Assembly: GCA_950097015.1 (NCBI GenBank)
Contig: CATNEN010000024.1
Location: 6,634,001-6,698,000 of the forward strand
From: Macrostomum hystrix
Taxonomy: Eukaryota > Animalia > Platyhelminthes
Direction: 5' to 3'
DNA length: 64,000 nucleotides
The translations under genes were made by a program, and so were the position numbers. Below, one piece after another: positions 1,725 to 49,239 of this stretch (positions are counted from its first letter, which is position 1; each line of letters opens with the position of its first letter). The notes beneath the pieces were generated by a model, which was not told the origin of the DNA, made no database searches, and saw only the letters and a program-made list of their open reading frames with translations.

Positions 1725-1795
1725 CCTCAAATTATGGGTTGTCCCTTGAATGATCTCACTGTTTGAATAGTTTCGGATCTTATCGATTTTATTAC

Positions 1796-2171: not shown

Positions 2172-2244
2172 CTAGTTGCAATGGAGCGGCGTGCACTTTT
2201 TGCAGAAACATTGCTTCTATGAATGACTTACCCACTCCTATTGA

Positions 2245-2765
2245 CACGCTTCCTCCTGACCATACAAACGCTTCCTCCTGACCCCACAATCGCTTCCTCC
2301 TGACCCCAGAATCGCTTCCTCCTGACCCCACAATCGCTTCCTCCTGACCATACAAACGCTTCCTCCTGACCCACAATCTCTTCCTCCTGACCCACAATCG
2401 CTTCCTCCTGACCCCACAATCGCTTCCTCCTGACCCCACAATCGCTTCCTCCTGACCCCACAATCGCTTCCTCCTGACCCCACAATCGCTTCCTCCTGAC
2501 CCCACAATCGCTTCCTCCTGACCCCACAATCGCTAACTCCTGACACCCATTTGACACTCGCTTCCTCCTGACCCCACAATCGCTTCCTCCTGACCCCACA
2601 ATCGCTAACTCCTGACACCCTTTTGACACTGGCTTCCTCCTGACACCCATTTGACACTCGCTTCGTCCTGACACCCATTTGACACTCGCTTCCTCCTGAC
2701 ACCCATTTGACACTCGCTTCCTCCTGACACCCTTTTGACACTGGCTTCCTCCTGACACCCTTTGA
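2245..2765. repeat. Intronic minisatellite, 22- and 28-bp units
   Basis: CGCTTCCTCCTGACCCCACAAT and CGCTTCCTCCTGACACCCATTTGACACT. Confidence 0.92.
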
Positions 2766-2796
2766 CATATTGGGCTTTGACCTTTGTCATCCTTAC

Positions 2797-3377
2797 CTAA
2801 GCGCGCTCTGCACACCCTTCTGATGCAGCACAGTCAGCTCATTCTCCAGCTGTTCGTAGCGCCTCTTCTCTGCGGACAACTTTTGTCGCAATTCTTCAGC
2901 CTCCCGTTCGGCAATGAGCCGGCGATCCCGCTCAGCTTCGAGTTGATCGCTCACGTTGGCCACCTCGGAGCGGTCGTGTCGCAGATCGTTATTAGCGTTT
3001 GCCAGTCGATTCTCCAGCTGAGCGCAGCGCTGCTTCAGCTCGGCTCGCTCACGTTCCAGGGCTTCAATGCGAGCCCGCAGTTCGGCCAATAGGCTGGCGT
3101 CGGCGACACCGTTGGCAGCTGCGGCGGCCCTGGCACTGGCCACGGCCAGAGGTCGGACCCGGCTGTACAGGCGCCACCAGGACCAGCGGCGCAGCTCCAA
3201 GTAGATGGCGCAATTGCGCTGGATAATCTCGGCCGCGTGAGCCCGGACGCGGGCTTCATGCGCCCGGCATCGGGCTAGGTGGCCCCGACAGGCGGCCTGG
3301 AAGTGCACCAGGTGAGAGCGAGCCGCCTCTTCGCGGCACTCGTCTAGTTGGGCTAGGGCGCCGGAGCGGAAGAACAC
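2797..3377 (-). CDS. MYO18: Myosin-XVIII exon 7 (converter end, IQ motif, start of coiled coil)
   Basis: cccag|VFFRSGALAQLD..FQAACRGHLAR (IQ-like)..IIQRNCAIYLELRRWSWWRLYSRVRPL (myosin II/XVIII WxWWRL motif)..AG|gtaagg. Confidence 0.92.
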
Positions 3378-3449
3378 CTGGGATGAATGATTTTGGGGAT
3401 CTCTTATACTTAGTGCTTTAGCCACATCTTAAATATACCCTCCTATCAA

Positions 3450-4570
3450 CCCTACCCCACTCTCCCAATCTACTCTCCCCGAATTTCCTAATCTTCTCTA
3501 CCCCACTCTCTCCAATCTACTCTACCCCACACTCTAATCTACTCTATCCCACTCTCTGAAGCTACTCTACCCCACTCTCTGAAGCTACTCTACCCCACTC
3601 TCTGAAGCTACTGTACCTCACTCTCTGAAGCTACTCTACCCCACTCTCTGAAGCTACTGTACCTCACTCTCTGAAGCTACTCTACCCCACTCTCTGAAGA
3701 TACTGTACCTTACTCTCTGAAGCTACTCTACCCCACTCTCTGAAGCTACTCTACCCCACTCTCTGAAGCTACTCTACCCCACTCTCTGAAGCTACTCTAC
3801 CCCACTCTCTGAAGCTACTGTACCTCACTCTCTGAAGCTACTCTACCCCACTCTCTGAAGCTACTGTACCTCACTCTCTGAAGCTACTCCACCCCACTCT
3901 CTGAAGATACTGTACCTCACTCTCTGAAGCTACTCCACCCCACTCTCTGAAGATACTGTACCTCACTCTCTGAAGCTACTCTACCCCACTCTCTGAAGAT
4001 ACTGTACCTTACTCTCTGAAGCTACTCTACCCCACTCTCTGAAGCTACTCTACCCCACTCTCTGAAGCTACTCTACCCCACTCTCTGAAGCTACTGTACC
4101 TCACTCTCTGAAGCTACTCTACCCCACTCTCTGAAGCTACTGTACCTCACTCTCTGAAGCTACTCCACCCCACTCTCTGAAGATACTGTACCTCACTCTC
4201 TGAAGCTACTGTACGTCACTCTCTGAAGCTACTCTACCCCACTCTCTGAAGCTACTCAACCCCACTCTCTGAAGCTACTCTACCCCACTCTCTGAAGATA
4301 CTGTACCTCACTCTCTGAAGCTACTCCACCCCACTCTCTGAAGATACTGTACCTCACTCTCTGAAGCTACTGTACCTCACTCTCTGAAGCTACTCTACCC
4401 CACTCTCTGAAGCTACTCTACCCCACTCTCTGAAGATACTGTACCTCACTCTCTGAAGCTACTCTACCCTACTCTCTATCCTACTCTAACCTACTCTATC
4501 CCACTATCTAACCTACTCTACCCCACTATCTAACCTACTCTACCCCACTCTCTAACCTACTCTACCCCAC
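3450..4570. repeat. Intronic minisatellite, 23-bp unit
   Basis: CTCTCTGAAGCTACT(C/G)TACC(C/T)CA repeated. Confidence 0.95.
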
Positions 4571-4684
4571 TCTCTACTATCTTCTTCGAACTACTCTCCA
4601 TACAAATTCTACCTCACAATTCGGTGAGTGAGCGATCACTCACGACAAAATATACTGAACTTGTAGCCTAGTAGTTACTCGTAC

Positions 4685-4805
4685 AAGTATGGAGTTTCTA
4701 CCATCAAGAGGTCTGGGGTTCGAAACTCAGCCTAGGGAAGAAGCAGTTAGTATCCTTGAGCACGGCAATTATATTTCCTGGGCGCCAGTCCCTGTCCACC
4801 TGAGA
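4685..4805 (+). mobile_element. Degenerate CORE-type SINE fragment
   Basis: GGTTCGAAACTC B box followed by GTATCCTTGAGCACGGCAATT. Confidence 0.45.
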
Positions 4806-4890
4806 TTACATCTGATCTGGCAAATCTTGGCTAAGCGTGCAAGCACGATTTTGTTAAGAAGCTTTCAGTAAAATGATTAAAGAAACTTAC

Positions 4891-5097
4891 GCAAAGCTGA
4901 CTTTTGTAATAATTCTGTCTATCACTAAACAAATCAGTGTGAACGGTAACAGCAGCAGCACTATCAGCTGAACAATAGCGCTGGCGCAGCTGCTGACTGT
5001 GCAACTGGCGCGGACTGACACTAACATAAGAGGCAGCCGGGCTCCTTGCCGCAGCATCGGCCGCCCTCAGCTGCCTACTGGTTGGCTCTGGTGACAT
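4891..5097 (-). CDS. Candidate alternative first coding exon of myosin-XVIII (69 codons)
   Basis: ATG at 5097, open to a perfect GTAAGT donor in phase 0, in frame with exon 7; ttttag acceptor 15 nt upstream; promoter-like sequence further upstream. No transcript evidence. Confidence 0.4.
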
Positions 5098-6011
5098 AGA
5101 TAATATATTAGGCTAAAATGCAGTGCTCCATGGCTATTCAGCGTTTGCCTGATTGCCTGATGTTTAAATTAAGCTTTGATTGCTAATGCGCGCAGGTGGG
5201 CGAGGTGAAGGGCCGGCGAGGGGATGACTCGTTGCGCCAGCTCTTTTATGACTGAGCCAGTGAGCGAAGCAGGAACCGGAGCTCCTAGCCAATGTCCGGG
5301 AGCAGGGGGAGAGAGGACTAGGGAAGAGTACACTCAGGGTAAGAGAGAGAAAGAGAGAGATCTTCTCTAGAGTCGGAGTGAGTCGCTAAATACTACTGCG
5401 CCCCGGGGAAAAGCAATTTTTAAAAAGGTTTCAGGGAGCCACATGTAGGCAGAAAAGGGTTGTGGGGGGCCGGCGGGCAGAAAGAAAATCCACGCCGGTT
5501 GGGAAGGAAGTTTTGGAAAGAAAAGTACGCGCCACAGAGTTTAACACCAGGGAACAGATTAAGGGTGTCCAAGCAATGGCCCACCACACAATAGCTCAAC
5601 ACAGGATTTGGCCCTAGTGGAGCAGTAATCACTATGCTCAGGGACTGCCCAACTCAAAGAAAACTATTTTGACAACTTCTGCCGCGTGTTATTTTGAGTA
5701 TGAGTTTTAGAATTCTTTATTATGAAGTGACTGGACTTATTCACATTGGGAATTCTTTGAATAATTTAATAATTGATCTGTGCATAATGGGACTCTGGTC
5801 TTAGCTCACGCATGAGGATCTCACAAGGGTATACGACAGAACAGCAGTAATCAGCAACACAATATATATCCATAGGACAAGCTGACGTCAAGCCCACGCG
5901 CACAATAGCTCAGAACAATGCAATCGATTCACTTCACATTCCCTGTAGTGGATATGCGATCCACCGAGGGAAATAATTGTCCTTGTCGGTATTCTTCACG
6001 GCAACGAAGGT

Positions 6012-6950: not shown

Positions 6951-7012
6951 CTAGGTGCTAATCACGTAGTCCGAAAACGTAAAGCTTTATAGCACCCAGA
7001 TACGTATCTCAC

Positions 7013-7405
7013 CTGAGTGTTGCCAATCTTATAAGCTGCCGCATGCAGTCCAAGATCTTCTAACACAGCTTTAGCCGCCTCGCGTTCGTCCAGCATGACG
7101 GCAACCGCCTGGCGGACCTCCGGCTTAGCCAGACTGGCGTATCGCTGACGCAACTCTCGGAAGCTGGCCTGATCCGGATAGCTGTACTTGTACGAGCGCA
7201 CAGTGTTGAGAATGTGGAAGGCCCTGAGCTGCAGGCGGAGCAGTGGCGTATTAACGCCCTGAGTGAAATCCGGCGCCATCAGCGAGGACTTCAGATCGCA
7301 CAGACCGGCATTGTGCACAGGAGACAGGCAATAGACAAAGTGGATGCGACCGCCCGAGCTGGCCTTCTTCAGCAGATCAGTCATGTAGTCCATCTGCGAC
7401 TTTAC
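7013..7405 (-). CDS. MYO18: Myosin-XVIII exon 6 (motor C-terminal part)
   Basis: tacag|VKSQMDYMTDLL..HFVYCLSP..LLRLQLRAFHIL..YKIGNTQ|gtgaga; 131 codons, phase 0/0. Confidence 0.92.
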
Positions 7406-9549: not shown

Positions 9550-12500
9550 AAAAGGAAGATGAAAAATGAAAACAGAAAATGAAAAAATGAAAAAATAGGG
9601 ATGAAATGGGAGAAATAAAGAATGAAAAGAGAGAGAAATGAAGAATAAAACGGGAGATAAATGAAGAATGAAAAGAGAGAAATGAAAAATGAAACGGGAG
9701 ATAAATGAAGAATGAAAAGAGAGAAATGAAGAATGAAACGGGAGGTAAATGAAGAATGAAACGGGAGGTAAATGAAGAATGAAAAGAGAGAAATGAAGAA
9801 TGAAAAAATAGATGAATGAAGAATGAAAAGAGAGAAATGAAGAATGAAACGGGAGATAAATGAAGAATGAAAAGAGAGAAATGAAGAATGAAAAGAGAGA
9901 AATGAAGAATGAAAAGAGAGATAAATGAAGAATGAAAAGAGAGATAAATGAAGAATGAAAAGAGAGAGAAATGAAGAATGAAAAGAGAGAGAAATGAAGA
10001 ATGAAAAGAGAGAAATGAAGAATGAAAAGAGATAAATGAAGAATGAAAAGAGATAAATGAAGAATGAAAAGAGAGAAATGAAGAATGAAAAGAGAGAAAT
10101 GAAGAATGAAAAGAGAGAAATGAAGAATGAAAAGAGAGAAATGAAGAATGAAAAGAGAGAAATGAAGAATGAAAAGAGAGAAATGAAGAATGAAAAGAGA
10201 GAAATGAAGAATGAAAAGAGAGAAATGAAGAATGAAAAGAGAGAAATGAAGAATGAAAAGAGAGAAATGAAGAATGAAAAGAGAGAAATGAAGAATGAAA
10301 AAAGAGAAATGAAGAATGAAAAGAGAGAGAAATGAAGAATGAAAAGAGAGAAATGAAGAATGAAAAGAGAGATAAATGAAGAATGAAAAGAGAGAGAAAT
10401 GAAGAATGAAAAGAGAGAGAAATGAAGAATGAAAAGAGAGAAATGAAGAATGAAAAGAGATAAATGAAGAATGAAAAGAGATAAATGAAGAATGAAAAGA
10501 GAGAAATGAAGAATGAAAAGAGAGAAATGAAGAATGAAAAGAGAGAAATGAAGAATGAAAAGAGAGAAATGAAGAATGAAAAGAGAGAAATGAAGAATGA
10601 AAAGAGAGAAATGAAGAATGAAAAGAGAGAAATGAAGAATGAAAAGAGAGAAATGAAGAATGAAAAGAGAGAAATGAAGAATGAAAAGAGAGAAATGAAG
10701 AATGAAAAGAGAGAAATGAAGAATGAAAAGAGAGAAATGAAGAATGAAAAAAGAGAAATGAAGAATGAAAAGAGAGAAATGAAGAATGAAAAGAGAGAAA
10801 TGAAGAATGAAACGGGAGATAAATGAAGAATGAAAAGAGAGAGAAATGAAGAATGAAAAGAGAGAAATGAAGAATGAAAAGAGAGAAATGAAGAATGAAA
10901 CGGGAGATAAATGAAGAATGAAAAGAGAGAGAAATGAAGAATGAAAAGAGAGAAATGAAGAATGAAAAGAGAGAAATAAAGAATGAATAGAGAGAGAAAT
11001 GAAGAATAAAACGGGAGATAAATGAAGAATGAAAAGAGAGAAATGAAGAATGAAAAAAATAGATGAATGAAGAATGAAAAGAGAGAAATGAAGAATGAAA
11101 CGGGAGATAAATGAAGAATGAAAAGAGAGAAATGAAGAATGAAAAGAGAGAAATGAAGAATGAAAAGAGAGAAATGAAGAATGAAAAGAGAGAAATGAAG
11201 AATGAAAAGAGAGAAATAAAGAATGAAAAGAGAGAAATGAAGAATGAAACGGGAGATAAATGAAGAATGAAAAGAGAGAGAAATGAAGAATGAAAAGAGA
11301 GAAATGAAGAATGAAAAGAGAGAAATGAAGAATGAAAAGAGAGAAATGAAGAATGAAAAGAGAGAAATGAAGAATGAAAAGAGAGAAATGAAGAATGAAA
11401 AGAGAGAAATGAAGAATGAAAAGAGAGAAATGAAGAATGAAACGGGAGATAAATGAAGAATGAAAAGAGAGAGAAATGAAGAATGAAAAGAGAGAAATGA
11501 AGAATGAAAAGAGAGAAATGAAGAATGAAAAGAGAGAAATGAAGAATGAAAAGAGAGAAATGAAGAATGAAACGGGAGAGAAATGAAGAATGAAACGGGA
11601 GATAAATGAAGAATGAAAAGAGAGAAATGAAGAATGAAAAGAGAGAAATAAAGAATGAAAAGAGAGAGAAATGAAGAATGAAAAGAGAGAAATGAAGAAT
11701 GAAACGGGAGATAAATGAAGAATGAAAAGAGAGAGAAATGAAGAATGAAAAGAGAGAAATGAAGAATGAAAAGAGAGAAATGAAGAATGAAAAGAGAGAA
11801 ATGAAGAATGAAAAGAGAGAAATAAAGAATGAAAAGAGAGAGAAATGAAGAATGAAAAGAGAGAAATGAAGAATGAAACGGGAGATAAATGAAGAATGAA
11901 AAGAGAGAGAAATGAAGAATGAAAAGAGAGAAATGAAGAATGAAAAGAGAGAAATGAAGAATGAAAAGAGAGAAATGAAGAATGAAAAGAGAGAAATGAA
12001 GAATGAAAAGAGAGAAATGAAGAATGAAAAGAGAGAAATGAAGAATGAAACGGGAGATAAATGAAGAATGAAAAGAGAGAGAAATGAAGAATGAAAAGAG
12101 AGAAATGAAGAATGAAAAGAGAGAAATGAAGAATGAAAAGAGAGAAATGAAGAATGAAAAGAGAGAAATGAAGAATGAAACGGGAGAGAAATGAAGAATG
12201 AAACGGGAGATAAATGAAGAATGAAAAGAGAGAAATGAAGAATGAAAAGAGAGAAATAAAGAATGAAAAGAGAGAGAAATGAAGAATGAAAAGAGAGAAA
12301 TGAAGAATGAAACGGGAGATAAATGAAGAATGAAAAGAGAGAGAAATGAAGAATGAAAAGAGAGAAATGAAGAATGAAAAGAGAGAAATGAAGAATGAAA
12401 AGAGAGAAATGAAGAATGAAAAGAGAGAAATGAAGAATGAAAAGAGAGAGAAATGAAGAATGAAAAGAGAGAAATGAAGAATGAAAAGAGAGAAATGAAG

Positions 12501-15500
12501 AATGAAAAGAGAGAAATGAAGAATGAAAAGAGAGAAATGAAGAATGAAAAGAGAGAAATAAAGAATGAAAAGAGAGAGAAATGAAGAATGAAAAGAGAGA
12601 AATGAAGAATGAAAAGAGAGAAATGAAGAATGAAAAGAGAGAAATGAAGAATGAAAAGAGAGAAATGAAGAATGAAAAGAGAGAAATGAAGAATGAAAAG
12701 AGATAAATGAAGAATGAAAAGAGAGAAATGAAGAATGAAAAGAGAGAAATGAAGAATGAAAAGAGAGAAATGAAGAATGAAAAGAGAGAAATGAAGAATG
12801 AAAAGAGAGAAATGAAGAATGAAAAGAGAGAAATGAAGAATGAAAAGAGAGAGAAATGAAGAATGAAAAGAGAGAAATGAAGAATGAAAAGAGAGATAAA
12901 TGAAGAATGAAAAGAGAGAGAAATGAAGAATGAAAAGAGAGAGAAATGAAGAATGAAAAGAGAGAAATGAAGAATGAAAAGAGATAAATGAAGAATGAAA
13001 AGAGATAAATGAAGAATGAAAAGAGAGAAATGAAGAATGAAAAGAGAGAAATGAAGAATGAAAAGAGAGAAATGAAGAATGAAAAGAGAGAAATGAAGAA
13101 TGAAAAGAGAGAAATGAAGAATGAAAAGAGAGAAATGAAGAATGAAAAGAGAGAAATGAAGAATGAAAAGAGAGAAATGAAGAATGAAAAGAGAGAAATG
13201 AAGAATGAAAAGAGAGAAATGAAGAATGAAAAGAGAGAAATGAAGAATGAAAAGAGAGAAATGAAGAATGAAAAAAGAGAAATGAAGAATGAAAAGAGAG
13301 AAATGAAGAATGAAAAGAGAGAAATGAAGAATGAAAAAATAGATAAATGAAGAATGAAGAGAGAAATGAAGACTGAAACGGGAGATAAATGAAGAATGAA
13401 AAGAGAGAAATGAAGAATGAAAAGAGAGAAATGAAGAATGAAAAGAGAGAAATGAAGAATGAAAAGAGAGAAATGAAGAATGAAAAGAGAGAAATGAAGA
13501 ATGAAAAGAGAGAAATGAAGAATGAAAAGAGAGAAATAAAGAATGAAAAGAGAGAAATGAAGAATGAAACGGGAGATAAATGAAGAATGAAAAGAGAGAG
13601 AAATGAAGAATGAAAAGAGAGAAATGAAGAATGAAAAGAGAGAAATGAAGAATGAAAAGAGAGAAATGAAGAATGAAAAGAGAGAAATGAAGAATGAAAA
13701 GAGAGAAATGAAGAATGAAAAGAGAGAAATGAAGAATGAAAAGAGAGAAATGAAGAATGAAACGGGAGATAAATGAAGAATGAAAAGAGAGAGAAATGAA
13801 GAATGAAAAGAGAGAAATGAAGAATGAAAAGAGAGAAATGAAGAATGAAAAGAGAGAAATGAAGAATGAAAAGAGAGAAATGAAGAATGAAACGGGAGAG
13901 AAATGAAGAATGAAACGGGAGATAAATGAAGAATGAAAAGAGAGAAATGAAGAATGAAAAGAGAGAAATAAAGAATGAAAAGAGAGAGAAATGAAGAATG
14001 AAAAGAGAGAAATGAAGAATGAAACGGGAGATAAATGAAGAATGAAAAGAGAGAGAAATGAAGAATGAAAAGAGAGAAATGAAGAATGAAAAGAGAGAAA
14101 TGAAGAATGAAAAGAGAGAAATGAAGAATGAAAAGAGAGAAATAAAGAATGAAAAGAGAGAGAAATGAAGAATGAAAAGAGAGAAATGAAGAATGAAACG
14201 GGAGATAAATGAAGAATGAAAAGAGAGAGAAATGAAGAATGAAAAGAGAGAAATGAAGAATGAAAAGAGAGAAATGAAGAATGAAAAGAGAGAAATGAAG
14301 AATGAAAAGAGAGAAATGAAGAATGAAAAGAGAGAAATGAAGAATGAAAAGAGAGAAATGAAGAATGAAACGGGAGATAAATGAAGAATGAAAAGAGAGA
14401 GAAATGAAGAATGAAAAGAGAGAAATGAAGAATGAAAAGAGAGAAATGAAGAATGAAAAGAGAGAAATGAAGAATGAAACGGGAGAGAAATGAAGAATGA
14501 AACGGGAGATAAATGAAGAATGAAAAGAGAGAAATGAAGAATGAAAAGAGAGAAATAAAGAATGAAAAGAGAGAGAAATGAAGAATGAAAAGAGAGAAAT
14601 GAAGAATGAAACGGGAGATAAATGAAGAATGAAAAGAGAGAGAAATGAAGAATGAAAAGAGAGAAATGAAGAATGAAAAGAGAGAAATGAAGAATGAAAA
14701 GAGAGAAATGAAGAATGAAAAGAGAGAAATGAAGAATGAAAAGAGAGAGAAATGAAGAATGAAAAGAGAGAAATGAAGAATGAAAAGAGAGAAATGAAGA
14801 ATGAAAAGAGAGAAATGAAGAATGAAAAGAGAGAAATGAAGAATGAAAAGAGAGAAATAAAGAATGAAAAGAGAGAGAAATGAAGAATGAAAAGAGAGAA
14901 ATGAAGAATGAAAAGAGAGAAATGAAGAATGAAAAGAGAGAAATGAAGAATGAAAAGAGAGAAATGAAGAATGAAAAGAGAGAAATGAAGAATGAAAAGA
15001 GATAAATGAAGAATGAAAAGAGAGAAATGAAGAATGAAAAGAGAGAAATGAAGAATGAAAAGAGAGAAATGAAGAATGAAAAGAGAGAAATGAAGAATGA
15101 AAAGAGAGAAATGAAGAATGAAAAGAGAGAAATGAAGAATGAAAAGAGAGAGAAATGAAGAATGAAAAGAGAGAAATGAAGAATGAAAAGAGAGATAAAT
15201 GAAGAATGAAAAGAGAGAGAAATGAAGAATGAAAAGAGAGAGAAATGAAGAATGAAAAGAGAGAAATGAAGAATGAAAAGAGATAAATGAAGAATGAAAA
15301 GAGATAAATGAAGAATGAAAAGAGAGAAATGAAGAATGAAAAGAGAGAAATGAAGAATGAAAAGAGAGAAATGAAGAATGAAAAGAGAGAAATGAAGAAT
15401 GAAAAGAGAGAAATGAAGAATGAAAAGAGAGAAATGAAGAATGAAAAGAGAGAAATGAAGAATGAAAAGAGAGAAATGAAGAATGAAAAGAGAGAAATGA

Positions 15501-15982
15501 AGAATGAAAAGAGAGAAATGAAGAATGAAAAGAGAGAAATGAAGAATGAAAAAAGAGAAATGAAGAATGAAAAGAGAGAAATGAAGAATGAAAAGAGAGA
15601 AATGAAGAATGAAAAAATAGATAAATGAAGAATGAAGAGAGAAATGAAGACTGAAACGGGAGATAAATGAAGAATGAAAAGAGAGAAATGAAGAATGAAA
15701 AGAGAGAAATGAAGAATGAAAAGAGAGAAATGAAGAATGAAAAGAGAGAAATGAAGAATGAAAAGAGAGAAATGAAGAATGAAAAGAGAGAAATGAAGAA
15801 TGAAAAGAGAGAAATGAAGAATGAAAAAATAGATAAATGAAGAATGAAGAGAGAAATGAAGACTGAAACGGGAGATAAATGAAGAATGAAAATAGAGAGA
15901 AATGAAGAATGAAAAGAGAGAAATGAAGAATGAAGAGAGAAATGAAGAATGAAACGGGAGAGAAATGAAGAATGAAAAGAGA
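9550..15982. repeat. 6.4-kb purine-rich 21-bp satellite
   Basis: AAATGAAGAATGAAAAGAGAG with variants (+AG, ACGGGAGAT). Confidence 0.98.
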
Positions 15983-16924
15983 GTATTGTTTGCTTTACGG
16001 AAAAGCAAAAAAGTTTATGGATTCTATTTAACAGTTGTTGTGTAGGAAGTGTAAGCCGTTGTGACAATTGATTCAATCCAACAGTGAATCACACTTGTTC
16101 AATTATGATGGCCTGAACTGACAAGTGATAATAATTTAAACAGCTTTCAACGGCTTTATCGCATCGGAATAATTTTTAGTTTATTGAAAAAAGATGCAAA
16201 TTTTACTGTCATGTCCATTGTACTAACGACTGGGGCAATGCACTGAGCGCAGTCGCCTAATGCTTGGACAAAGCAACACACGATTTTAGAATAAACAATT
16301 ATAAAAAACACCAATAAAACACGAAAGCTTCTATTGCTAAGCATGCATAAGAGCGAATTTACATGCAACGAAATTGTCTCACTGATATGTGCAAGGAGAA
16401 ACAAGAATTGGGTGTGTAAATTAAAGTTAAGATATAAAAAAAATCAGCAGCTACTAAAATGGAGGGCATATAAAACCTGAGTCATGCAAATCAGTACAAA
16501 TGAAGGTTGCGGGAGCCACAATAACTGCAGTCGAAAGATGAAGTCCAGAAATTTCTAACACAATACGAGTATATTGATACGACATTTAAACAGAGAATCT
16601 AATAATATTTCAATAGCGGCTGGCGTTTCTACACACCAACAACAATGGAGCTAAAATATTAAAAAAATACATTCAAGCACAGACAAACTGATAGGTGAGA
16701 TACCTTAGGACTGTCCGAATTATCGATCTGAGGAGCAGGTCGATATTAAAGCAGGTATGAGCTAAGAACTTGATTGATAATAACCTTACTAGTGGGTGAT
16801 GATAACAGTAATTAATAATAAATAATAATACCTGTCCTAAACGGGCTAGATGTGCAGCCGACAGCACAACCGTACGGCTATTCAGTTCGTGAACTAGAAC
16901 ACACCCCTGTGGGACGCACCCCTT

Positions 16925-30258: not shown

Positions 30259-30426
30259 CTATAATACGGATTAACTATCGAACAATTTCACATGGATTTA
30301 CTATTGATCATGTCAATCTAAACATTTGGTGGTTTCAGACGGATTTACTTTGTCAGTCAACATGATATGGATAAGATCCAGCTATTTTTAGGTGAATAAA
30401 CAGCAGAGCCTGATGGCGGCACAGAC

Positions 30427-31022
30427 CTGCACATAGTCCAGACTGCCAGCAACGAACTGTTTTAAAGCGTCGGCCGCCTCGACCGAGACTTCAAAGCCGA
30501 CGCCGGCCAGGGTCTGCTGGCGCTCGTCGATGCCAGCCTGAACTCGCTCCATTTCGCGCACCATCGCCCGCTCCTCCTCGGCCTGGGTTAGCGGCGGTGG
30601 AGCCTTGGCGGCTGCTAGGTGCCGATCGTAGCCAGATAAGCAGAGATCCTCCGGCTGTGTGCCGGCCAGGGTGCCATCGGCCGCCAGGTGTTCGCCGCCG
30701 AATGCCCGTTTCACAGTTGCGGCCGTGGCGCTGTAGAGCATCTTGGCGCGGATCGGGGCCGAATCGTGGACATACTGCATAAACAGCCACTGGTAGCCGT
30801 ACGAATTGCGCGCATCCAGCCTGTAGAACAGGTAGCAGGCGGCGCCTTTGTCCAGGTGCGGTGCCACGCATTCGTCATATTGATCGCGCCAGTTGGCGCC
30901 AGGCTTCACCGGTGCGCGAGTCTCCAATTCTAAAGACTCGTCGCGAATGACTGCCTTCAGGAAGCGCCAATTGCCATCTTCGGCGACAGCTTCGGCAAAT
31001 GCCTGCGCCAATTCGTCGCTTG
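30427..31022 (-). CDS. TWF: Twinfilin exon 2 (N-terminal ADF-H domain)
   Basis: gtcag|(A)SDELAQAF..CYLFYRLD..WLFMQYVHDSAPIRAKMLYSATAATVKRAFGG..DYVQ|gtctgt. Confidence 0.96.
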
Positions 31023-33668: not shown

Positions 33669-36573
33669 ATAAAGATAAAGATAAAGTTAAATTTTTTGGT
33701 ACTGCCCGAGTTGCATCAAAAAGAAAATGAATTTAGTTCTCTACCTCTGTCTGGCACTTTGGGCAGATCCTGCGTTCGTATTATACTCTTGTTCTGGCTG
33801 TTCTCTGTGTCTCACAGTAAGTCTTTTGTAGTGTAGTGTCAGCTTGTTTGCCCGTGTTATTATTCAGTACTTATTTTTAGACACGTGTATTTTGCTAAGA
33901 GTTCACCCACGCCAAGCCGGGCCGGACCAGCTGGGGGAACGGACGCCCACCACCCCCGCGAGCGCTACCCCGGGGCTACGGTCCCGGCCAATCAGCGAGC
34001 GACCCGGCCTCACTACCTGTCTACCCTCGGCAAGAAGCGACCCCGGGGCTCAGAACGGCGGTCGCAAGTCTACTGCGATTTGTCGCCTTGGCTCATGCTA
34101 CAGCCAGGCATCCACCTCGCCGATCGACCTAATTTGGGGTTAAGGTGACTCTATATAACGAAGCGTGTTTTTGTAGTCCAAATTATCTGTTTCTTCGCAA
34201 TTCGCCTCACACTGTGAGAAGCACGTGCAAATTATCGTTCTCTGCAATTCGCCTCACACTGTGAGAAGCACGTGCAAGCTAGTCCACTTGTTTTGTCCCT
34301 CCCCGCCCGACCACACTCCGCTTGTTCAGTTAGGTAGCTTTCGGCGCTACGCGTCTTGAGAGTGCGCCGCTGACAAGGGTGGTCTAGATAGGCGCTTGTT
34401 GTCGAAGTCAGTACGTGCTCTCTTCGGAGACTCCGCCGTCAGGCAGGAGTGCCAACCGATAGGATCTGTCTGGGCAGCGCTGAAAGCAGAGACAACCGGA
34501 GCCTCTCGGGAAGAGTAGCGCGGATGTAGGCCAGTTAAGTAAAAATTGTTATATCCAAATTGTTAGACCAGACTTGCTTCTCACTGTGAGCGCGCTATAA
34601 TTTATTTCCGTGTGAACATCTATTCTGTCAGTATAACTTTTAAGTCAAGTAAACGATATTCAAAGTAATTCCTATTCGTATCTGGAATCTTAGTCACAGC
34701 CAATTAACTCACTCCTAATCAAATTATTCGAGTCTTCGCGTTCATACTGTGTTATTCTTTTTCATTGGGAGTTTCGCCGGGCCGGAGGACGACACACGGG
34801 TCTCATCGCTTATCTATTCCACTTCGCTCGCTACCAGTCTCTAACGCTATTTAATTCCAGATTTCCCTGCTGCTATTGAAACGATTGGTAGGACACCGAC
34901 CCCGGTGAATAGTGAATAGTCGCTAGCTTTAAATACCTCACGCTCCAGCTAGGACATTCATTTTATTACAGTAGTCCCTGCAGGCCATCGCAAACGGCGA
35001 AGGGAAGGGGCCGAAATAATATAAGTTTTAGTGTTGTACAGTATGGGCTGTACAGTGTTATACAGTACAGAATTCATTGTCTGTAACATTTACTGGCGCA
35101 CAAAATACTAAAAATAGCGCAGTCGATGGTTGATGGTAAATAAGTTGTGCATCTACTTAAGCGTCAGCCATGCACTAAAACAGCTTGAGACAGTTTAGGT
35201 AATGCTCAAAAATAGAAGAGCGCAGATAAATATTTTCATATTTGATTTCTGTAATCCAGCCTTGTCTGTTGATCGGTTGCCATGGTCCCTAGTGCCTCCT
35301 TGGACTCGCCTCGGAATTGCCTCGGAGTTGCCCCGGGGCTCGTGTCGGCTTCGCAGCGTGCTGCTTTCGCCTTGCCAGTTATAGAAAGTACGATTATTTC
35401 GTATTTCAATCGCCGGATCCTGCAGACGACAAAGGTCCGGGACTGACTTTCTATTATAAAAAACGGGTTAAGATCTTCGTGTGACAGTCCACGACTCGGT
35501 CTAATACTGCGCCTTATGGCGAAATAACCTTTAGTAATCGACAAACGCAAAACCGGATTTACTCTCTGATTTGACATAACCATTAGCGAGCGGGCCGGGC
35601 CAGTTGCCCTCCGTCGCGTTCCACCGTCTATATTTATATCTGTTATTTTCATAACAAATTTGTTAATTGTTATTTACACCCTGCAGTGTGCGTGTCAGTA
35701 CGCTCTTCCTCTTCCCCAGTCTCTCTTTCTGTCCCAGGCAGAGGAGGTGCGTCTCGGTTGTAGGTCTCTCCTTCTAGCATGTCTTAATGTTGACCGCAAT
35801 CGATCCGTCGTGCCTAGCCCTGTCCAGCGCCGGTTTCTGCTGTTCGGGACAGAGTTTTTTGCCGACGTGGCATTTCGCGGACTCGCTCTCTCTTCTCCCG
35901 CGGTCGTCCCACAGTTGATCTCCCTGACAACGCGGGACGAAAGCTGGGGCCGGGCTGGTTAGTGTGCTCGGCGGGGACATCCTCTCCAGCCGTCTGTTTC
36001 TCCCTTGCTCGGTCGGGTCCCGCTCAGGCCTGGCAACGCCGCCCCGGCGTGTTTGCTCCCTCGAGGACCGGCTCGCTCCGGCCGCGCCATCTCGCTTTTT
36101 CCTGCAAATTGCTTGTCTAGGGTGGGGCCAGACCGGCACGCCATATCTGCCTGCACTTTATCTATTACTCCCTCTTTCTCTCTCCTGCCTTACCTTATTT
36201 TTGCCCTGCATACCAGTCAACCTGGCTATTCATCATCAACAGGACTCTGCGGGATGGCCTTGTTTTCTGTTTATTGTGTAAAGACGGTAAAATAACATTA
36301 AAAAACAATAAGTCATTTCTTTCACCTTTTTTTTCTCTATTGTTACTATTTCTAGCCATTACATAATTTCTATTTTTTGTAGCCTCTGCACTCAGCAACA
36401 AATAATGGGAGGCTATAAGCTAAGCAGCAAGTAAACATTCGTGAACATCTAAAGATATATATAAACATCAGTATTTTTAAACATGAGAAAACTTAATGGA
36501 ACTAAAAAGGCAGCTTAAAATTAGTTTTCTCAGTGAAAATTGACTCAGTTTCTTAAACCTCTAGAGGTTAGCT

Positions 36574-37496
36574 ATGTCGAATGCCAAAAACTATCGCTCG
36601 AAACTTCAAAGTGCCGCTTCAGAGGGCCGGAGCGACGCAGTCGAGAAGTTGCTTAACGATGGTGCTGACATCAATGAACAGGACGAGAGCGACGGATCTA
36701 CACCGTTGATTTTGGCTTCCGAGAGAGGTCACGTGACTGTGGTTCGCTTGCTGCTGGACAGGGGTGCCAGCCTCACAATATGTAAAACGGACCGTTGGAG
36801 ACCATTGCACATTGCCGCCTACAATGGTCACGGACAGGTCGTCCAGCTGCTGATAGGGGCTGGCTCCGAACTTGACTGGCCAGACTGTCAAAATTCGACA
36901 CCGCTGCACGTGGCTACACTGTACGGCTACTTGGACGTCGTTCGTAGACTGCTGGTTTCGGGCGCCGATTCCGGGAAGCGGGACTATTGTGGCAGATTAC
37001 CTCTGCACCTCGCTTGTCAATATGGACACATGGATACTGTCATCCTGCTTCTGCAGGATGCTCCGAAGCTTGTTGAATCTCCCGATGCGACAAAGTCGAC
37101 GCCGCTCCACACGGCCGCAAAGATGGGACGCGCCGCAATCGCAAAGCTGCTACTTGACAACGGCGCCAATGCGGACGCCCTGGACGCCGCAGGCAAGACG
37201 CCGATCGAGCTGGCTACTCAAGCTGGACATATCAAGACCCTTAAATGCATGCTGCCGTGGATGGATACCTCCATGGAAGTGACTTCCAGCGCTGTCCTGC
37301 GCTTGGCTGCTGCATTTGGCCAAGTCGAATGCTTCGTCGCGATTCTGCGGCACTGCAACTCATCGGTTGAGGCAGCTCGCAGCGCCTTGCACGGCCTGCC
37401 GCAGACAGAGTCCGTCAGGCGACTGACGATGCATCTGGAGAGCGCCCGGTTCCTAGCGCCAGACACTTCCACAGCTGAAGTTCGCAACACGTTCTG
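36574..37496 (+). CDS. Ankyrin-cGLR fusion exon 1 (7-8 ankyrin repeats)
   Basis: Repeated G.TPLH.A...GH..VV.LL..GA motifs; donor TG|gtgaga at 37497 (phase 2) just before the apparent stop. Confidence 0.88.
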
Positions 37497-37922
37497 GTGA
37501 GATGAGACCTCTCTTAGTTGGCACAAGTCTCAAGTCACTCAATGGTGGACTCCATATTATAAGCCTTCTATTTTTTCGCGTTCAGTCACCCTAGCTGGCA
37601 GTGAAAAGTCGATTAGAAACGATGGACTAACTTACCTTACACTCGGAGTTTACAGTAGCTGTTGAGCAGCAGCAAATTAGCGTACGTGGATACAGTGATT
37701 CTCTGAGGCACTAATACCTGACCCTAAAGAGCGCTTATCTCGCTTTTCAAACTCCTGGGTGACGGGATGACTACGTTGTCCAGTAAAGCAACATAGGCAC
37801 ATTAATCGCAATCCAATATTAGTGAGCCTACAGAACTACTCGTACTCGTTACTCGTACATTGCAATGTCAGATAATAACTTCTGCCATCACTGTTTTATC
37901 TGTCATCGTGCCCTTCTCGCAG

Positions 37923-38269
37923 CATGCCAACCCTGATCGAGGCTCTGGAGTTGGCTGGCTTTAACCTGCAGCGGATGAAATATCTGCACAACAGAGCAAT
38001 GGTGCAGCAGGGCATCATCCGCTGCCAGATTGCCGACAGCATCGACTGGAGCGGCTGCGAGGCGCACCTTGTTGGCAGCTACAGAGACGGCTGCGGAAAC
38101 TCCTTCGTGTGCGCCGATGGCAGCACGGACTTGTCCTCGGACATTGATGTCCTCCTGGTGGACAAGAGCTTGAAGACCTTGCACATCGAACCATTTTGCC
38201 AGTGTCCAGCAGTTTTGTACAGCGACAAAGTGTCCTATGAGGATGGACACGTGATGGTCTCTGGATTCT
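37923..38269 (+). CDS. Ankyrin-cGLR fusion exon 2 (nucleotidyltransferase GS and DID motifs)
   Basis: ctcgcag acceptor completes a Cys codon in frame; HLVGSYRDG...SSDIDVLL is the hGS-x-DhD signature of the pol-beta/Mab-21/cGAS fold; donor T|gtgagt at 38270. Confidence 0.85.
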
Positions 38270-38353
38270 GTGAGTTCGTGACCTTTCCTTGACAATGATT
38301 ATCAATTAGAATATCTGGCAAAATTATAATCTATGATCAAACTTACCTTTTAG

Positions 38354-39897
38354 CCTCAAATCCAACAAAGTATTATGGACCTTCTCGCTTGAAGCCCGCC
38401 ATGGACATGGTGCCAGCCCAGTGGTGCTGCTGCTACCCGACGATTGCGTTGTTCGAAAACGCACGCCACTTTCCCAAGCACGTTCTTGACAAGCTGAAGG
38501 TCGAGGTTGCGAGGCCGCAGTCCTGTCACGTGGTCTCGGCTTCGGCGCCGGACAAGCGCGGAAAGCAGAAGCGGATCGGAACTACATTCCTGGAAAGGAT
38601 CGTCATGGAGAATCTCACCTCCGAGCAATGCAAGTTCTTTGTGACTCTCAAGTACCTCGTCAAGTGTGTCATTTCAAATCAAGCTCCAGGACTGAAGACA
38701 TACCATGTCAAGACTCTGCTTTTCGAGGCTCTAGATGCTACCCCACCAGAGCAGTGGCAGCATGAGACACTGCGTTTGATGCTTCTCATGGCTCTGGAAA
38801 CCATGGAGTCGAAGTTGCGAGCGATGCAATCAGGTGATTTGAAGTTCCTGCAGCATTTCTTCCTGCCCCATGCTGTGATCTATCTGAAGGACTCCAGCAA
38901 CCCAGCTGCGATAGCTGACTCGCTCCGGAATGTAATCGACAGCATTGACGAGAGGCTCAGCGAGTTTGCTGCCACTTTGAGACGTGCTGACAACTGCATC
39001 GTATTCAACCCGTTCCTGAATCTCGCGCTAGTTCAGTGTAAATTGCAGTACTCAGATAACTGTCCTTCACAAGATGATCTGAAGGATTTACCGTCCAATC
39101 TGTACACCGCAATGGCTGCTGTAAACAAATGTATGAACATGTTAGACCAACACAAGCCAGAGACAATGGCTGACTTTAGTGAAGCCGTAGCTGCACTGGC
39201 TCTCACAGAACACATCGGACCCTTTGCCATCTCTGCCAAAGTGTCAATAAGAGTTCTGATCCTGATGAAGCTTGGACGGCAGGATCAGGCTCGAGACGAG
39301 CTTGTGCAGCTGATCAACAGTAGCCACAGCTCGTCAGAGTGGTTTGCATCGGGTGCTGTCTCACTCAAACACTGCGAATCTGTCCAGGCACTCTCGAAAC
39401 AGCTGCAGCAGAGGAACTGCATAGCCAAGTTCTGTTGTCGACTAGGCGACGATGACGACGATGAGTTCAAGCTCGAGGCTGCGGGAATTCAGCACTTTCA
39501 ATACGACCTGTTTCCCATTGTGCTCTCCAATCACATCAGTGCCTACTATATGAACTTTAATGCGCTGGCCATCTACCTGGCGTTTCTCCTCGTGCCAGCT
39601 GAATGCAGAGACAGATGCGACGAGATGGTGATGAGACTAGCCGAAGACACCAGGGCAGATCTGCAGGAGGTCTTTCTGGCACTGAAGTTCGTTCAGGACA
39701 CTTGCCGGCTGGTTGGTATTGTGCTCAAGCATAGGAGGACCATCGGAGAGGAACCCGTGCTGCAACAGGCGCTGCAACACCGCATCTGCAGTGATGCAAG
39801 TCTTCGTGTGCTCTTTGACTATATATTTAAGAATGAAGTTTTGAAACTAAAATTCGTAAACATTTTACAAGCATATGAGTTTGGTCTTATTAAATAA
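38354..39897 (+). CDS. Ankyrin-cGLR fusion exon 3 (Mab-21/cGAS C-terminal lobe plus helical extension)
   Basis: ttttag acceptor in frame; MDMVPA (third acidic residue), FLERIVMENL..LKYLVK..LKTYHVKTLLF..W..FLQHFFLPHAVIY are typical Mab-21/cGLR motifs. The last ~20 codons may be replaced by a further exon at 39922. Confidence 0.85.
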
Positions 39898-40354
39898 TTC
39901 CTTGCCCCCCTTACATTTCAGAAAAAATTTGAAGAGTCAATCATCGACTGGACTTGCGGGCAAATTCTTGGAGACCCTGGCTCCTTGTGCACTCATGGAA
40001 CATCCTGTGGAACTGGCTGAACACCAGATGCGATTGGCAGTCACAGTGGTCGAAGCTCCGAGTCAATATTTTAAACTGTCTCGTGAACTATTCTTCTATT
40101 CTGATCTCACAGCACATTTCGTATAAGAGTTCTTCCATTTTCCTCATGGCGTCGAAATGCAAAATCCATGGCAGGTACAACAAACAAAATACAGTAAGTT
40201 ATTCTGTTTTAACCGTCATCCTCAATTTCGACTAACTCTGAGTCAAACCGTAAACCGCCGCAATCTTTTCCAGAAATGAAACAGACTGAAGAGGCTAAAA
40301 ACTTTAATCAGAGCATTCTCGCTCCTCAGTTCAGTTCCTGAAGAGAGAAGAAAT

Positions 40355-42560: not shown

Positions 42561-42619
42561 CACCCCTTCCCCCAGTTAGGGCTAGTTGTCACCCCCTGGC
42601 TCTTAGGGATGCAACGTAC

Positions 42620-43205
42620 CGGCGTCATCAGCAGCCGCAGCATTGACGACTCGCTTGCGTCCTGGGCGGGATGAATCAATGCGACCGGCGCTATGAACAA
42701 CATCCAGATGTCGGCGCAGGTGACTGGTCCGACCAAACGGCTTGTAGCACAGGTGGCAGGTTAGTCGTTTAATACCGGCGTGTTTGATCTCAACGTGCCG
42801 CTTCAGGTCGTGCAGCCGGTTAAAGAGGGTGTCGCAATGCTCGCACTGATGCGGCTGACGACCCTGGTTGGCCTCCCTACCTGAGCAGTAGGACAGGTGA
42901 GCTTTGTAGCTAATGTTGTTCGAGTAGCTACCGCCGCAGCTTTCGCATCGAATAATGACGTCATCGGCGGAGTCGTTGAGAGAAGCGGCTAGAATACAGC
43001 TCTTCTGGTGAATGACAGCGTACGCTTTGGTCTTAAAAGCTTTGCCGCAATGCTCACAATTGGTGAGCTGCTCATCGCTTTCTGCCATCGAGTTTCTTTT
43101 CTTTGGTTCAGGAGAAGTTGAACAGTCGGCGCTGGTGTCAGCCTCACTCTTGACTTCATCAGCCGAATCATTGACTCTCTTAGGGGTCCTCTTGAACCGC
43201 TTCAT
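42620..43205 (-). CDS. Zinc-finger protein, exon with 4 C2H2/C2HC fingers
   Basis: ATG at 43205 after acceptor ctgcag (43216); CEHC..HQKSC, CESC..HLSYC, CEHC..HVEIKH, CHLC..HLDVVH; donor G|gtacgt joins the next exon in frame. Start codon uncertain. Confidence 0.8.
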
Positions 43206-43276
43206 TGCTAAGGGGCTGCAGTTTGAGGCAGTAGAATAATGTATTAAGAAAAAAATAATGCAAATGCATATGCCTG

Positions 43277-44440
43277 AACCAAACCGGACACTGCACCTGA
43301 ACCAATTCTGACACTGCACCTGAACCAATTCTGACACTGCACCTGAACCAATTCTGACACTGCACCTGAACCAATTCTGACACTGCACCTGAACCAATCC
43401 TGACACTGTACCTGAACCAATCCTGACACTGTACCTGAACCAATTCTGACACTGCACCTGAACCAATTCTAACACTGCACCTGAACCAATCCTGACACTG
43501 CACCTGAACCAATCCTGACAATGCACCTGAACCAATCCTGACAATGCACCTGAACCAATCCTGACACTGTACCTGAACCAATCCTGACACTGTACCTGAA
43601 CCAATCCTGACACTGCACCTGAACCAATTCTGACACTGCACCTGAACCAATTCTGACACTGCACCTGAACCAATTCTGACACTGCACCTGAACCAATTCT
43701 GACACAGCATGTGATTCTGAACCAATTCTGACACTGCACCTGAACCAATTCTAACACTGCAACAGAACCAATCCTGACACTGTACCTGAACCAATCCTGA
43801 CACTGTACCTGAACCAATCCTGACACTGCACCTGAACCAATTCTGACACTGCACCTGAACCAATTCTGACACTGCACCTGAACCAATCCTGACACTGTAC
43901 CTGAACCAATCCTGACACTGTACCTGAACCAATTCTGACACTGCACCTGAACCAATTCTAACACTGCACCTGAACCAATCCTGACACTGTACCTGAACCA
44001 ATCCTGACACTGTACCTGAACCAATCCTGACACTGCACCTGAACCAATTCTGACACAGCATGTGATTCTGAACCAATTCTGACACAGCATGTGATTCTGA
44101 ACCAATCCTGACACTGCACCTGAACCAATCCTGACAATGCACCTGAACCAATCCTGACAATGCACCTGAACCAATCCTGACACTGTACCTGAACCAATCC
44201 TGACACTGTACCTGAACCAATCCTGACACTGCACCTGAACCAATCCTGACACTGTACCTGAACCAATCCTGACACTGCACCTGAACCAATCCTGACACTG
44301 CACCTGAACCAATCCTGACACTGTACCTGAACCAATCCTGACACTGCACCTGAAACAATTCTGACACTGCACCTGAACCAATTCTGACACTGCACCTGAA
44401 CCAAGCCTGACACTGCACCTGAACCAAGCCTGACATTGCA
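43277..44440. repeat. 23-bp minisatellite upstream of the zinc-finger coding exon
   Basis: ACACTG(C/T)ACCTGAACCAAT(T/C)CTG repeated. Confidence 0.96.
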
Positions 44441-45058
44441 CTATAACTCTAAAATATAGGTACTTTTGTAAATTATAGAAATTGTTTAGAATGAATAATA
44501 AAACATGACGATATTAAACCAGTAAATCTGTATAATTACTAGAGAAAAAGTGTAAAAATGTATGCTATTAAAAAGAAAACATTAAAAAGTGCCTAGAGAA
44601 GACAACGGCCACTGATTGAAAGCAGGTGTATAAAGCATAAAGTAGGGAGTTTCGATTTGAAAAAATTCATAAAATTACAATAGGAATTACAAACACAGCC
44701 TTACCTCATAAACAAAAAATCATTTTCATTTGTAAATAATCAATTAAAATGGTGTGTTTGAATGTACTCTAAATATCGTCAAAGAGATCAGTTAGGCTTC
44801 AAAGCTGGCGATAGTGTTGGCAGGCCAGACAGAACACGTAGTTTGCTTATCTCTAACTACGCGAAGTTAAATTGATATATCGATAGGTTTGACAGCTAAC
44901 ACTGTTGAGCTTGATTTGTAGGCGATAAGCTGATGAGCAATAATGGTAGCCTCCGAAGCCTCCGAAGCCTCCGAAAGGGTCGCTGGAAGGTTAAAAACTA
45001 TTATTACACAAGCTATTCGAATAATAATCATCTTACTTTGCAACTATGCTGTTACAAT

Positions 45059-47860: not shown

Positions 47861-47888
47861 TCAAAGCAGACAAAACACTCGGACCCAC

Positions 47889-48373
47889 TTGGCAAGAGTA
47901 TCCACAGTGTGCGTGCCAACATGCGGCGTGACGGTGACATTGAGAGCGGCGGCCTCAGCGATTAGCGGATGGTCTCCGGGCAGCGGCTCGGGGTCGGTGA
48001 CGTCGAGGCCAGCGCCGAAAATTCTTCCCAGCTCGAGGGCGGCCAACAGGGCGTCGGTGTCCAAAAGGCCACCGCGGCCAACATTCACCAAGAAGGCGGT
48101 CGGCGGCATCAGCGCCAAGCGGCGGGCGTCGATGAGTCGTCGGGTCTCGTCGGTGAGGGGACAGGCGAGCAGCAGGACGTCCGAGCTGGCCACCAGGCTG
48201 TCCAGGCTGGCCAGGAACTCGGCGCCGGACAGTGCGGCTTCAATGTCGGGCGGGGCGCGGCGCCGCTGATGGTAGGCGATGCGCATGCCCAGGCCGCCAG
48301 AACCGCAGCGACGGGCCACCGCGCGACCCACGCTGCCCAGGCCGACGATGCCCAGGCGGCGGCCAAACAGGTC
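47889..48373 (-). CDS. GRHPR: Glyoxylate/hydroxypyruvate reductase-like exon 3 (NAD(P)-binding domain)
   Basis: DLFGRRLGIVGLGSVG, CPLTDETRRLI, LVNVGRGG, GAGLDVTDPEPL, TPHVG: D-2-hydroxyacid dehydrogenase motifs. Confidence 0.92.
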
Positions 48374-49239
48374 CTGTGGGTTAGGGCGTGTGCTTTTCAA
48401 TTTTTTAATTGGCTATTTACTTTTTATAATTTTTTCTGACACTTGCATGTTCTATTTTACCTATTACTGCGCAATGATGACATCGTTTTTGGCCCCAACT
48501 TTTGCCATCAGCACTACTGTCTACTAACAATGGATCTGAAAGATCAGCTCCTATACTGTCAGGCCCTATTTGAAAACATCGCTGTTATTCAGGCGAAAAC
48601 ACTGCTTATCGGACAGACAGCAGAAGCCGCAGATGCAACCTGAGCACAGTCGCCGTTTGAATTGAAGTGCGCCATGCCAAAGATGTTGTTCTTGCTCGAC
48701 CGCCTTTCACTGCTTGCTGTGTTTCTTCGGATGCTTCCACACAATTTATTTGTAACGTCGGCTGCTTTTAGCCAAAATGTGCCCCATGCATTGGAGATCA
48801 GTTCAAATGACTTTAGACTTGGTATTAATGTAGCTGAAGATGCAGACCAGACTGACCAGTTTACTACTCTGTTCGAAAATTAGGAGTTTGTGGTTTAAAT
48901 TTATCTGACAGCGTTTTACTGCTTTTATTTTAGCATCGTTTTCTTATCCAGAAAGCTTTTAGCTGCCATATAGAGCCTAATTCGTGTCGATTTCTGTAAA
49001 GATCGCAATAGTTCCAGACAGTACCAAAAAATTATAATAAAGTAAATCAAAGCGTGGCCATGTTGACATGTTTTTGCTAGGGTTGTTTTGACTAGCATAA
49101 AGTGAAATGCTAGTGAAAGTCAAAGTAAAAAAGTTACTTACAATTTTCCTAGCCTCTTACATTTTTTTGTCGGTTTAAACAATTAAACCACATTGTGGCA
49201 CTTTCCTCCGCCATTTCTAACTCTCATCCGAAGCGCTTC

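Follow-up and report, generated by a model that had tools for sequence, protein, structure and literature searches.

A four-exon ankyrin-cGLR gene with a complete predicted active site in the flatworm Macrostomum hystrix

Do three open reading frames (ORFs) that are listed separately in the genome of the flatworm Macrostomum hystrix belong to one gene, and what might its product do? The ORFs, which come from a program-made list, lie on the + strand at 36574-37500, 37924-38292 and 38389-39897 of a 64,000-nucleotide stretch, here called the window (GenBank assembly GCA_950097015.1, contig CATNEN010000024.1, positions 6,634,001 to 6,698,000). An earlier note on this DNA had joined them into one protein of ~937 amino acids, an ankyrin-repeat array fused to a cGAS-like receptor (cGLR). 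The joining into a single protein proved correct, while the details required revision: the ORFs are parts of a single, expressed gene of four exons, the protein has 936 amino acids, and the coding sequence ends at 40020, not at 39897. Our overall reading, to which we assign a probability of about 0.6, is that of an ankyrin-cGLR (ANK-cGLR) gene with a complete active site and an inferred mechanism in which the ankyrin part regulates a nucleotide signal.

The gene structure was established with four public sequencing runs of a single 2020 study. Of the words sampled from 36400-40100, each run contains ~80%, the value expected of an intron-less copy, and the contigs of all four match the stretch without any letter difference other than the missing introns. 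The introns at 37496|37923, 38269|38354 and 39796-39921 are absent from contigs in every one of the runs, the first of them from one contig per run. A contig of 3344 nucleotides (X1) starts at 36500, covers all exons and passes 40100, and the ankyrin and Mab-21 parts therefore share one transcript. Because introns are missing from the contigs at consensus splice sites, the contigs must be of cDNA origin, and the runs were read as RNA.

The 5′ untranslated region occupies at least 36409-36573, with contigs colinear into exon 1 from 36409 (X2) and 36500 (X1), and the coding sequence opens with the first ATG (36574) downstream of an in-frame TAG at 36562-36564. Coding exon 1 (36574-37496, +), with about eight ankyrin repeats and a linker, ends in phase 2. 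Intron 1 (37497-37922; 426 nucleotides, GT..AG) follows; the junction reads CTG|GTGAGA...TCTCGCAG|C and splits a Cys codon, and a polypyrimidine tract and AG precede the start of exon 2 at 37923. Coding exon 2 (37923-38269, +) was assigned the N-terminal helix and the first half of the nucleotidyltransferase core from its sequence, the family profile and the match to a Macrostomum lignano protein, P0001 (see below). Intron 2 (38270-38353; 84 nucleotides, GT..AG) interrupts a Ser codon in phase 1, with the junction TCT|GTGAGT...CTTTTAG|C. These two junctions had been proposed, with the same phases, in the earlier note, and both the consensus sites and the spliced contigs of the four runs bear them out.

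Coding exon 3 (+) can be divided into two parts. The first (38354-39000) contains the third catalytic Asp, the remaining nucleotidyltransferase core and the Mab-21_C bundle (~38641-38871), as indicated by Pfam, the profile and the orthologue model, and the second (39001-39795) a family-specific C-terminal domain that was delimited by conservation and the same model. The exon ends at 39795 in phase 0. Intron 3 (39796-39921, +) is of the GC..AG type, with the donor GAT|GCAAGT and the acceptor TTTCAG|A; its 126 nucleotides are a multiple of three, and they hold the 33 final codons and the stop (39895-39897) of the earlier ORF model. Coding exon 4 (39922-40020, +) supplies the last 32 codons and the TGA stop at 40018-40020, according to its translation, a weak match to P0001 and the contigs. 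The coding length is thus 923 + 347 + 1442 + 96 = 2808 nucleotides, or 936 amino acids. The 3′ untranslated region extends past 40100, since contigs run on to that position and further. Retention of intron 3, if it occurs, would give an alternative C-terminus ending at 39897; as the main isoform it was rejected, the spliced form being found in 4/4 runs.

What kind of protein does the spliced gene encode? Exon 1 matches two Pfam families, Ank_2 (E 2.9e-45) and Ank (E 9.8e-46), the latter in six scored stretches. About eight repeats are visible by eye, in agreement with the seven to eight counted previously, and the exon shows the tandem repeats that characterize ankyrin-repeat proteins. For Mab-21_C, exon 3 exceeds the curated cut-off (E 1.4e-7). 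Exon 2 alone had no Pfam match, which we explain by a nucleotidyltransferase half that is too divergent for PF03281. The motifs GSYRDG, SDIDV, AMDMVPA, LKTYHVKT and HFFLP, which had been picked out by reading the translation, were all found.

The predicted active site is formed by a Gly-Ser pair at 38074-38079, an Asp-Ile-Asp at 38140-38148 (Asp codons 38140-38142 and 38146-38148) and a third Asp at 38404-38406, which together give the complete G-S / [D/E]h[D/E]h / h[D/E]h motif by which Li et al. (2023) define cGLRs. We were able to align a profile of 54 family sequences with cGAS, placing GS on its G-S, D-x-D on the E-F-D of mouse cGAS and the third Asp on that of 'SVDI'; the statement that all three catalytic acidic positions are intact was correct. 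Against PDB sequences, the same profile matched Sp-cGLR1 (E 2e-27), Cv-cGLR1 (E 7e-18) and cGAS (E 1e-17 to 1e-20), and its significant matches were limited to cGLRs, cGAS, MB21D2 and MAB21L1. Single sequences searched with phmmer gave only marginal matches to Sp-cGLR1 (E 0.5-0.7), and the relationship became clear with the 54-sequence profile.

A word search with exon 3, in databases that do not include the source genome's own proteome, returned five proteins, all from M. lignano. The best match, P0001 (BOX15_Mlig016808g2; 793 amino acids, ankyrin + Mab-21_C), is likely the orthologue of the window gene, judging by a separate comparison of each exon translation. Residues 142-294 of exon 1 are 49% identical to P0001 1-153, residues 4-114 of exon 2 are 68% identical to 172-282, and residues 1-480 of exon 3 are 53% identical to 285-765, while residues 2-17 of exon 4 match 771-786 weakly and in colinear order. 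P0001 is colinear over junction 2, with exactly one residue remaining for the split codon.

An AlphaFold model of P0001 residues 165-793, built with the 54-sequence alignment, had a mean predicted local distance difference test score (pLDDT) of 90.7 and a predicted TM score of 0.91. Both lobes of the caged cGLR architecture, the nucleotidyltransferase core and the C-terminal helix bundle, are seen in this model of the orthologue. In a Foldseek search of the PDB, the first ranks were human and mouse cGAS, Cv-cGLR1, Sp-cGLR1 and MAB21L1 (E ~4e-7). VIA-align, an independent fold search, was run with model residues 1-330 and gave Z scores of 20.2 for Cv-cGLR1, 18.8 for Sp-cGLR1, 18.5 for mouse cGAS, 18.2 for MB21D2, 17.2 for a Tribolium cGLR, 16.6 for MAB21L1, 14.7 for MiD49, 12-14 for bacterial CD-NTases and 12.3 for OAS1. 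For the orthologue, the closest folds are therefore those of cGLRs and cGAS (Z 18-20 vs 12-14 for the bacterial CD-NTases). The superposition on cGAS and cGLRs proposed in the earlier note was thus obtained with the model of P0001 rather than of the window protein, and it matches both. Among the contigs no transcript end was found at 37500, the nucleotidyltransferase/Mab-21 fold was matched and the aspartates align with the catalytic triad; the reading as a cGLR-type enzyme therefore stands.

The best structural and profile matches, Sp-cGLR1 (Stylophora pistillata, PDB 8GJY) and Cv-cGLR1 (Crassostrea virginica, PDB 8GJW), have the catalytic motif layout and the Mab-21_C helix bundle in common with the window protein. 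They are single-domain, basic proteins, activated by double-stranded RNA (dsRNA) or double-stranded DNA (dsDNA), with known products (PMC9980059), whereas the window protein has an additional ankyrin array and C-terminal domain and a near-neutral core. Similarly, human and mouse cGAS have the fold and the aligned catalytic residues of the window family, but the window protein is without the H(X5)CC(X6)C zinc thumb and the basic N-terminal tail of cGAS. A motif search for H(x)CC(x)C found no match in exons 2 or 3, as the first reading of the sequence had suggested. With this result and a core isoelectric point (pI) of 6.9, membership of cGAS proper was rejected.

The family has a conserved Cys/His cluster of its own between the D-x-D strand and the C-lobe (38190-38260 and 38420-38440 in the window). 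Its residues, numbered in P0001:165-793, are H91, C96, C98, H113, C144, C145, C177 and H178, and C98 is present in 46/54 aligned sequences, distant relatives included. From this pattern of conservation, the cluster may be a metal site distinct from the zinc thumb of cGAS.

The C-terminal domain that follows the Mab-21_C bundle comprises ~265-290 residues, is mostly helical and is conserved in paralogues and in M. lignano. It is modelled confidently in P0001, and a Pfam scan of this domain, in the window protein and three relatives, gave nothing significant. In an Atlas fold search, residues 1-562 of the orthologue model align with a 721-amino-acid mollusc Mab-21 cluster (TM 0.54), and the C-terminal extension may, on this model, be partly common to the expanded mollusc cGLRs. 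A protein-atlas feature search with the domain reached mollusc clusters with scores of just 0.85 and is taken as a lead, not as evidence.

How new is such a protein? The earlier note had placed it in a lineage with no characterized cGLR signalling, which overstated its novelty: the family and its architecture are already catalogued in M. lignano, and the window gene adds one member. M. lignano proteins with Ank_2 (ANK-cGLR) appear in Table S2 of Li et al. (2023), and Table S3 records the cloning of five M. lignano members of this very family (numbers 89-93) for a screen with dsDNA and polyinosinic:polycytidylic acid (poly I:C) as ligands (PMC9980059). The 15 active enzymes characterized there are insect, anemone, mollusc, hydra and coral proteins, none being from a flatworm, and the authors name the ligands of 'orphan' cGLRs as the main limitation of their screen (PMC9980059). 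The ankyrin-cGLR fusion is recorded in the same work as a known, minor architecture, with the coral Stylophora pistillata as the example (Figures 1C and 4C; PMC9980059). The M. lignano ANK-cGLRs, for example PAA45980.1 and P0001, resemble the window protein in having an ankyrin array, then the cGLR, then a C-terminal helical domain, with the same motifs. PAA45980.1 is number 90 of Table S3 and corresponds to the cGLR part of P0037, which at 936 amino acids has the length of the window protein. They differ in coming from another species, and the database entry of P0001 is truncated at the N-terminus.

Is the window gene alone in its own genome? In six-frame searches, exon 3 had at least 84 matches in the genome and exon 2 at least 80, almost all with an open frame. 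Each exon-2 match lies directly upstream of an exon-3 match, which indicates that the intron separating the D-x-D exon from the third-Asp exon is common to the family. We sampled 21 loci (20 distinct), with a mutual identity of ~30-35%. All 21 have GS, 20/21 have D-x-D and 20/20 have the third Asp, and the catalytic positions are at least 90% conserved in the 54-sequence alignment. At one paralogue, L030 (G000:C2:6143828-6153827, nucleotidyltransferase exon near 6998-7300), D-I-G replaces D-I-D at the second catalytic Asp; going by this substitution, it may be a catalytically dead member.

The ankyrin fusion was followed at ten loci for which long upstream flanks had been retrieved. In all ten, the sequence immediately upstream on the same strand codes for ankyrin repeats, over ~0.4-4.5 kb, which makes the ANK-cGLR fusion the rule of the family and the repeat number its main variable. 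At one extreme, L028 (G000:C2:4858708-4868707) has ~4.5 kb of unbroken ankyrin coding sequence (1407-5876), or ~45 repeats, before the cGLR exons. At L036 the ankyrin part is just ~0.4 kb, with a second ankyrin block downstream that may be a tandem gene. In the coral S. pistillata, only 3 of the 42 cGLRs carry added ligand-interacting domains, either ankyrin repeats or death domains (PMC9980059), whereas the family described here, of at least 80 genes, has ankyrin repeats in all sampled members and in widely varying number.

The same architecture was found outside this genome. A hidden Markov model (HMM) search with the family alignment retrieved 672 proteins with E <= 0.001, of which 81 reached E <= 1e-30. 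The names of six strong matches were looked up and all were from M. lignano; many of the strong matches have 900-1400 amino acids and carry the cGLR module C-terminally, and full scans of four such long proteins showed long ankyrin arrays in each. The M. lignano relatives carry from 7 to >20 ankyrin repeats. Bivalve proteins are among the more distant matches.

What would the ankyrin array do for such an enzyme? In the mechanism that we propose, the protein would serve in the cytosol as a surveillance enzyme, inactive in the resting state. The ankyrin array, perhaps together with the C-terminal domain, would bind a ligand other than nucleic acid or would keep the enzyme inhibited, and binding of the ligand would start the production of a nucleotide signal, either cyclic or short and linear. 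A downstream receptor would read this signal, and the obvious candidate is a divergent STING-like family encoded in the same genome. Regulation by something other than nucleic acid is suggested by charge: the pooled pI of the window cGLR core is 6.9 and that of the C-terminal domain 5.3, while dsDNA- or dsRNA-sensing cGLRs have a pI >8.5 and acidic cGLRs are suspected of having other ligands (PMC9980059).

The candidate receptor family was recognized from an open exon at G000:C2:9104028-9105038 (- strand; L015:1501-2511). It matches the Pfam family STING_LBD with 25 bits, under the cut-off of 27 (E 1.4e-5), over profile positions 3-145 of 182, and its first helix is similar to the one conserved at the start of the STING ligand-binding domain. 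When the ORF was cut at the listed TTG start, which removes this helix, no Pfam or PDB match was obtained. The exon has at least 12 paralogues, mostly clustered on C2 at 8.97-9.10 Mb, with others at C7:13.14 Mb, C39:4.23-4.25 and 19.16 Mb, and C38:7.50 Mb.

Modelling of the exon with 10 paralogues gave a structure of low confidence (pLDDT 57.5). The top 50 Foldseek matches of this low-confidence model were all STING (E ~1e-7), and the ligand-binding domains of oyster, human, coral, fly and choanoflagellate STING filled the top nine ranks in VIA-align (Z 9.2-10.7). The profile of the family matched PDB sequences weakly (E ~0.004), alongside spurious repeat and coiled-coil matches. Model residues 238-337 showed a weak resemblance to TIR domains (Z 6.4-7.5), no more than a common alpha/beta arrangement could give, and this is taken as a lead only. 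Two conserved exons upstream of the STING-like exon had no recognizable domain. A word search for database relatives of the family found none, a weak negative given its length window and the divergence of the family. We consider this divergent STING-like family a candidate for the downstream receptor.

Several points tell against the proposed enzyme and its mechanism. There is no enzymatic, ligand or immune evidence for any flatworm cGLR, and the five M. lignano members were screened with dsDNA and poly I:C without any flatworm appearing among the 15 active enzymes (PMC9980059). The structure that was modelled is that of the orthologue, which is 53-68% identical, and not that of the window's own protein. 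The RNA nature of the four runs was deduced from the intron-less contigs, the library type not being on record. Finally, the STING-like assignment relies on a sub-threshold Pfam score and a model with a pLDDT of 57.5.

Could the cGLR domain instead sense dsDNA or dsRNA directly, as in cGAS and Drosophila cGLR1, with ankyrin repeats that merely tether the protein to a partner or compartment? All cGLR ligands identified so far are dsDNA or dsRNA (PMC9980059), and some family members have a basic core, such as P0037, with a pI of 8.8 for residues 310-650. For the window gene we hold this to be unlikely, in view of the near-neutral core, the acidic C-terminal domain, the lack of the zinc thumb motif in exons 2 and 3 and the position of the M. 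lignano relatives, which were screened with just these two kinds of ligand and are not among the reported active enzymes (PMC9980059).

A second alternative keeps an active nucleotidyltransferase and changes its product, which would be linear 2′-5′ oligonucleotides, as made by OAS, or a nucleotide added to RNA or protein, in either case independently of STING. The Pol-beta nucleotidyltransferase fold is indeed common to OAS, terminal uridylyltransferases (TUTases) and poly(A) polymerases (Z 10-12), and the STING-like candidates are very divergent. The orthologue model, however, scores Z 18-20 with cGLRs and cGAS against 10-12 with OAS and TUTases, and the significant profile matches in the PDB are confined to cGLRs, cGAS, MB21D2 and MAB21L1, which leaves this alternative with a small chance of being right. 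Membership of the OAS family itself was rejected: no OAS family appeared in the Pfam scan or among the profile matches, and OAS1 scored 12.3 against 18-20 for the cGLRs.

It would be more surprising still if the protein were a non-catalytic scaffold of the Mab-21 superfamily that only binds nucleotides or proteins, like MAB21L1 and MiD49/51. MAB21L1 (Z 16.6) and MiD49 (Z 14.7) are good structural matches too, and such a role would be compatible with flatworm members for which no activity has been demonstrated. MAB21L1/2 and MiD49/51 share the superfamily fold but have an incomplete catalytic triad, and Mab21L1/2/3 are described as being without a predicted functional active site (PMC9980059). 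The window protein, by contrast, has the full GS / D-x-D / D set, and the set is kept among paralogues that are just 30-35% identical. MAB21L membership was rejected on the same grounds, the triad being complete here and kept in 20/21 sampled paralogue loci.

Lastly, the idea of two adjoining genes, one with the ankyrin ORF and another with the Mab-21 ORFs, was suggested by their separate listing and by the stop that the unspliced frame reaches at 37498-37500. It can be dismissed, since single contigs span exons 1-4 with the introns removed in four runs (unless these are chimeric assemblies), P0001 is continuous over the junctions and the same gene order is found at 10/10 paralogue loci.

As for its surroundings, the window gene is a singleton among housekeeping genes, outside any cluster of paralogues. 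Reading the ORF translations by eye, we noted a twinfilin/ADF-H-like neighbour at 30388-31011 (-) and a D-isomer 2-hydroxyacid dehydrogenase-like neighbour at 47861-48400 (-), neither of which bears on the ANK-cGLR gene. A tandem DNA repeat at 42603-44441 (-) is open over long distances in several reading phases, and its unit comes to ~20 residues; it adjoins, on the upstream side, a C2H2 zinc-finger coding region with which it is fused in the ORF list. In addition, ~6 kb at 10001-16000 has a G+C content of 0.29, a GC skew of ~+0.96 and an AT skew of ~+0.71, one strand being nearly without C and T, and is probably a purine-rich satellite.

What does the locus mean for the biology of these flatworms? 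We can offer a broader scenario tentatively, as a possibility that we ourselves doubt: macrostomids may have a lineage-specific form of innate immunity in which at least 80 ankyrin-diversified cGLRs would respond to protein or other non-nucleic-acid ligands, in the manner of NLR/LRR proteins, and would act with a lineage-specific STING-like family, whose ligand-binding domain is maybe followed by a TIR-like domain. All sampled cGLRs of the family are fused to variable ankyrin arrays and the core of the window protein is near-neutral, which makes the family a natural place to look for cGLR activation by protein ligands or of a guard type. The question is testable, as Macrostomum offers RNA interference and transgenesis, and the corrected gene model and the STING-like candidates provide concrete constructs for cloning. 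The single gene is ordinary within its family; the family and its possible STING-like partners form a testable system for cGLR activation by ligands other than nucleic acids.

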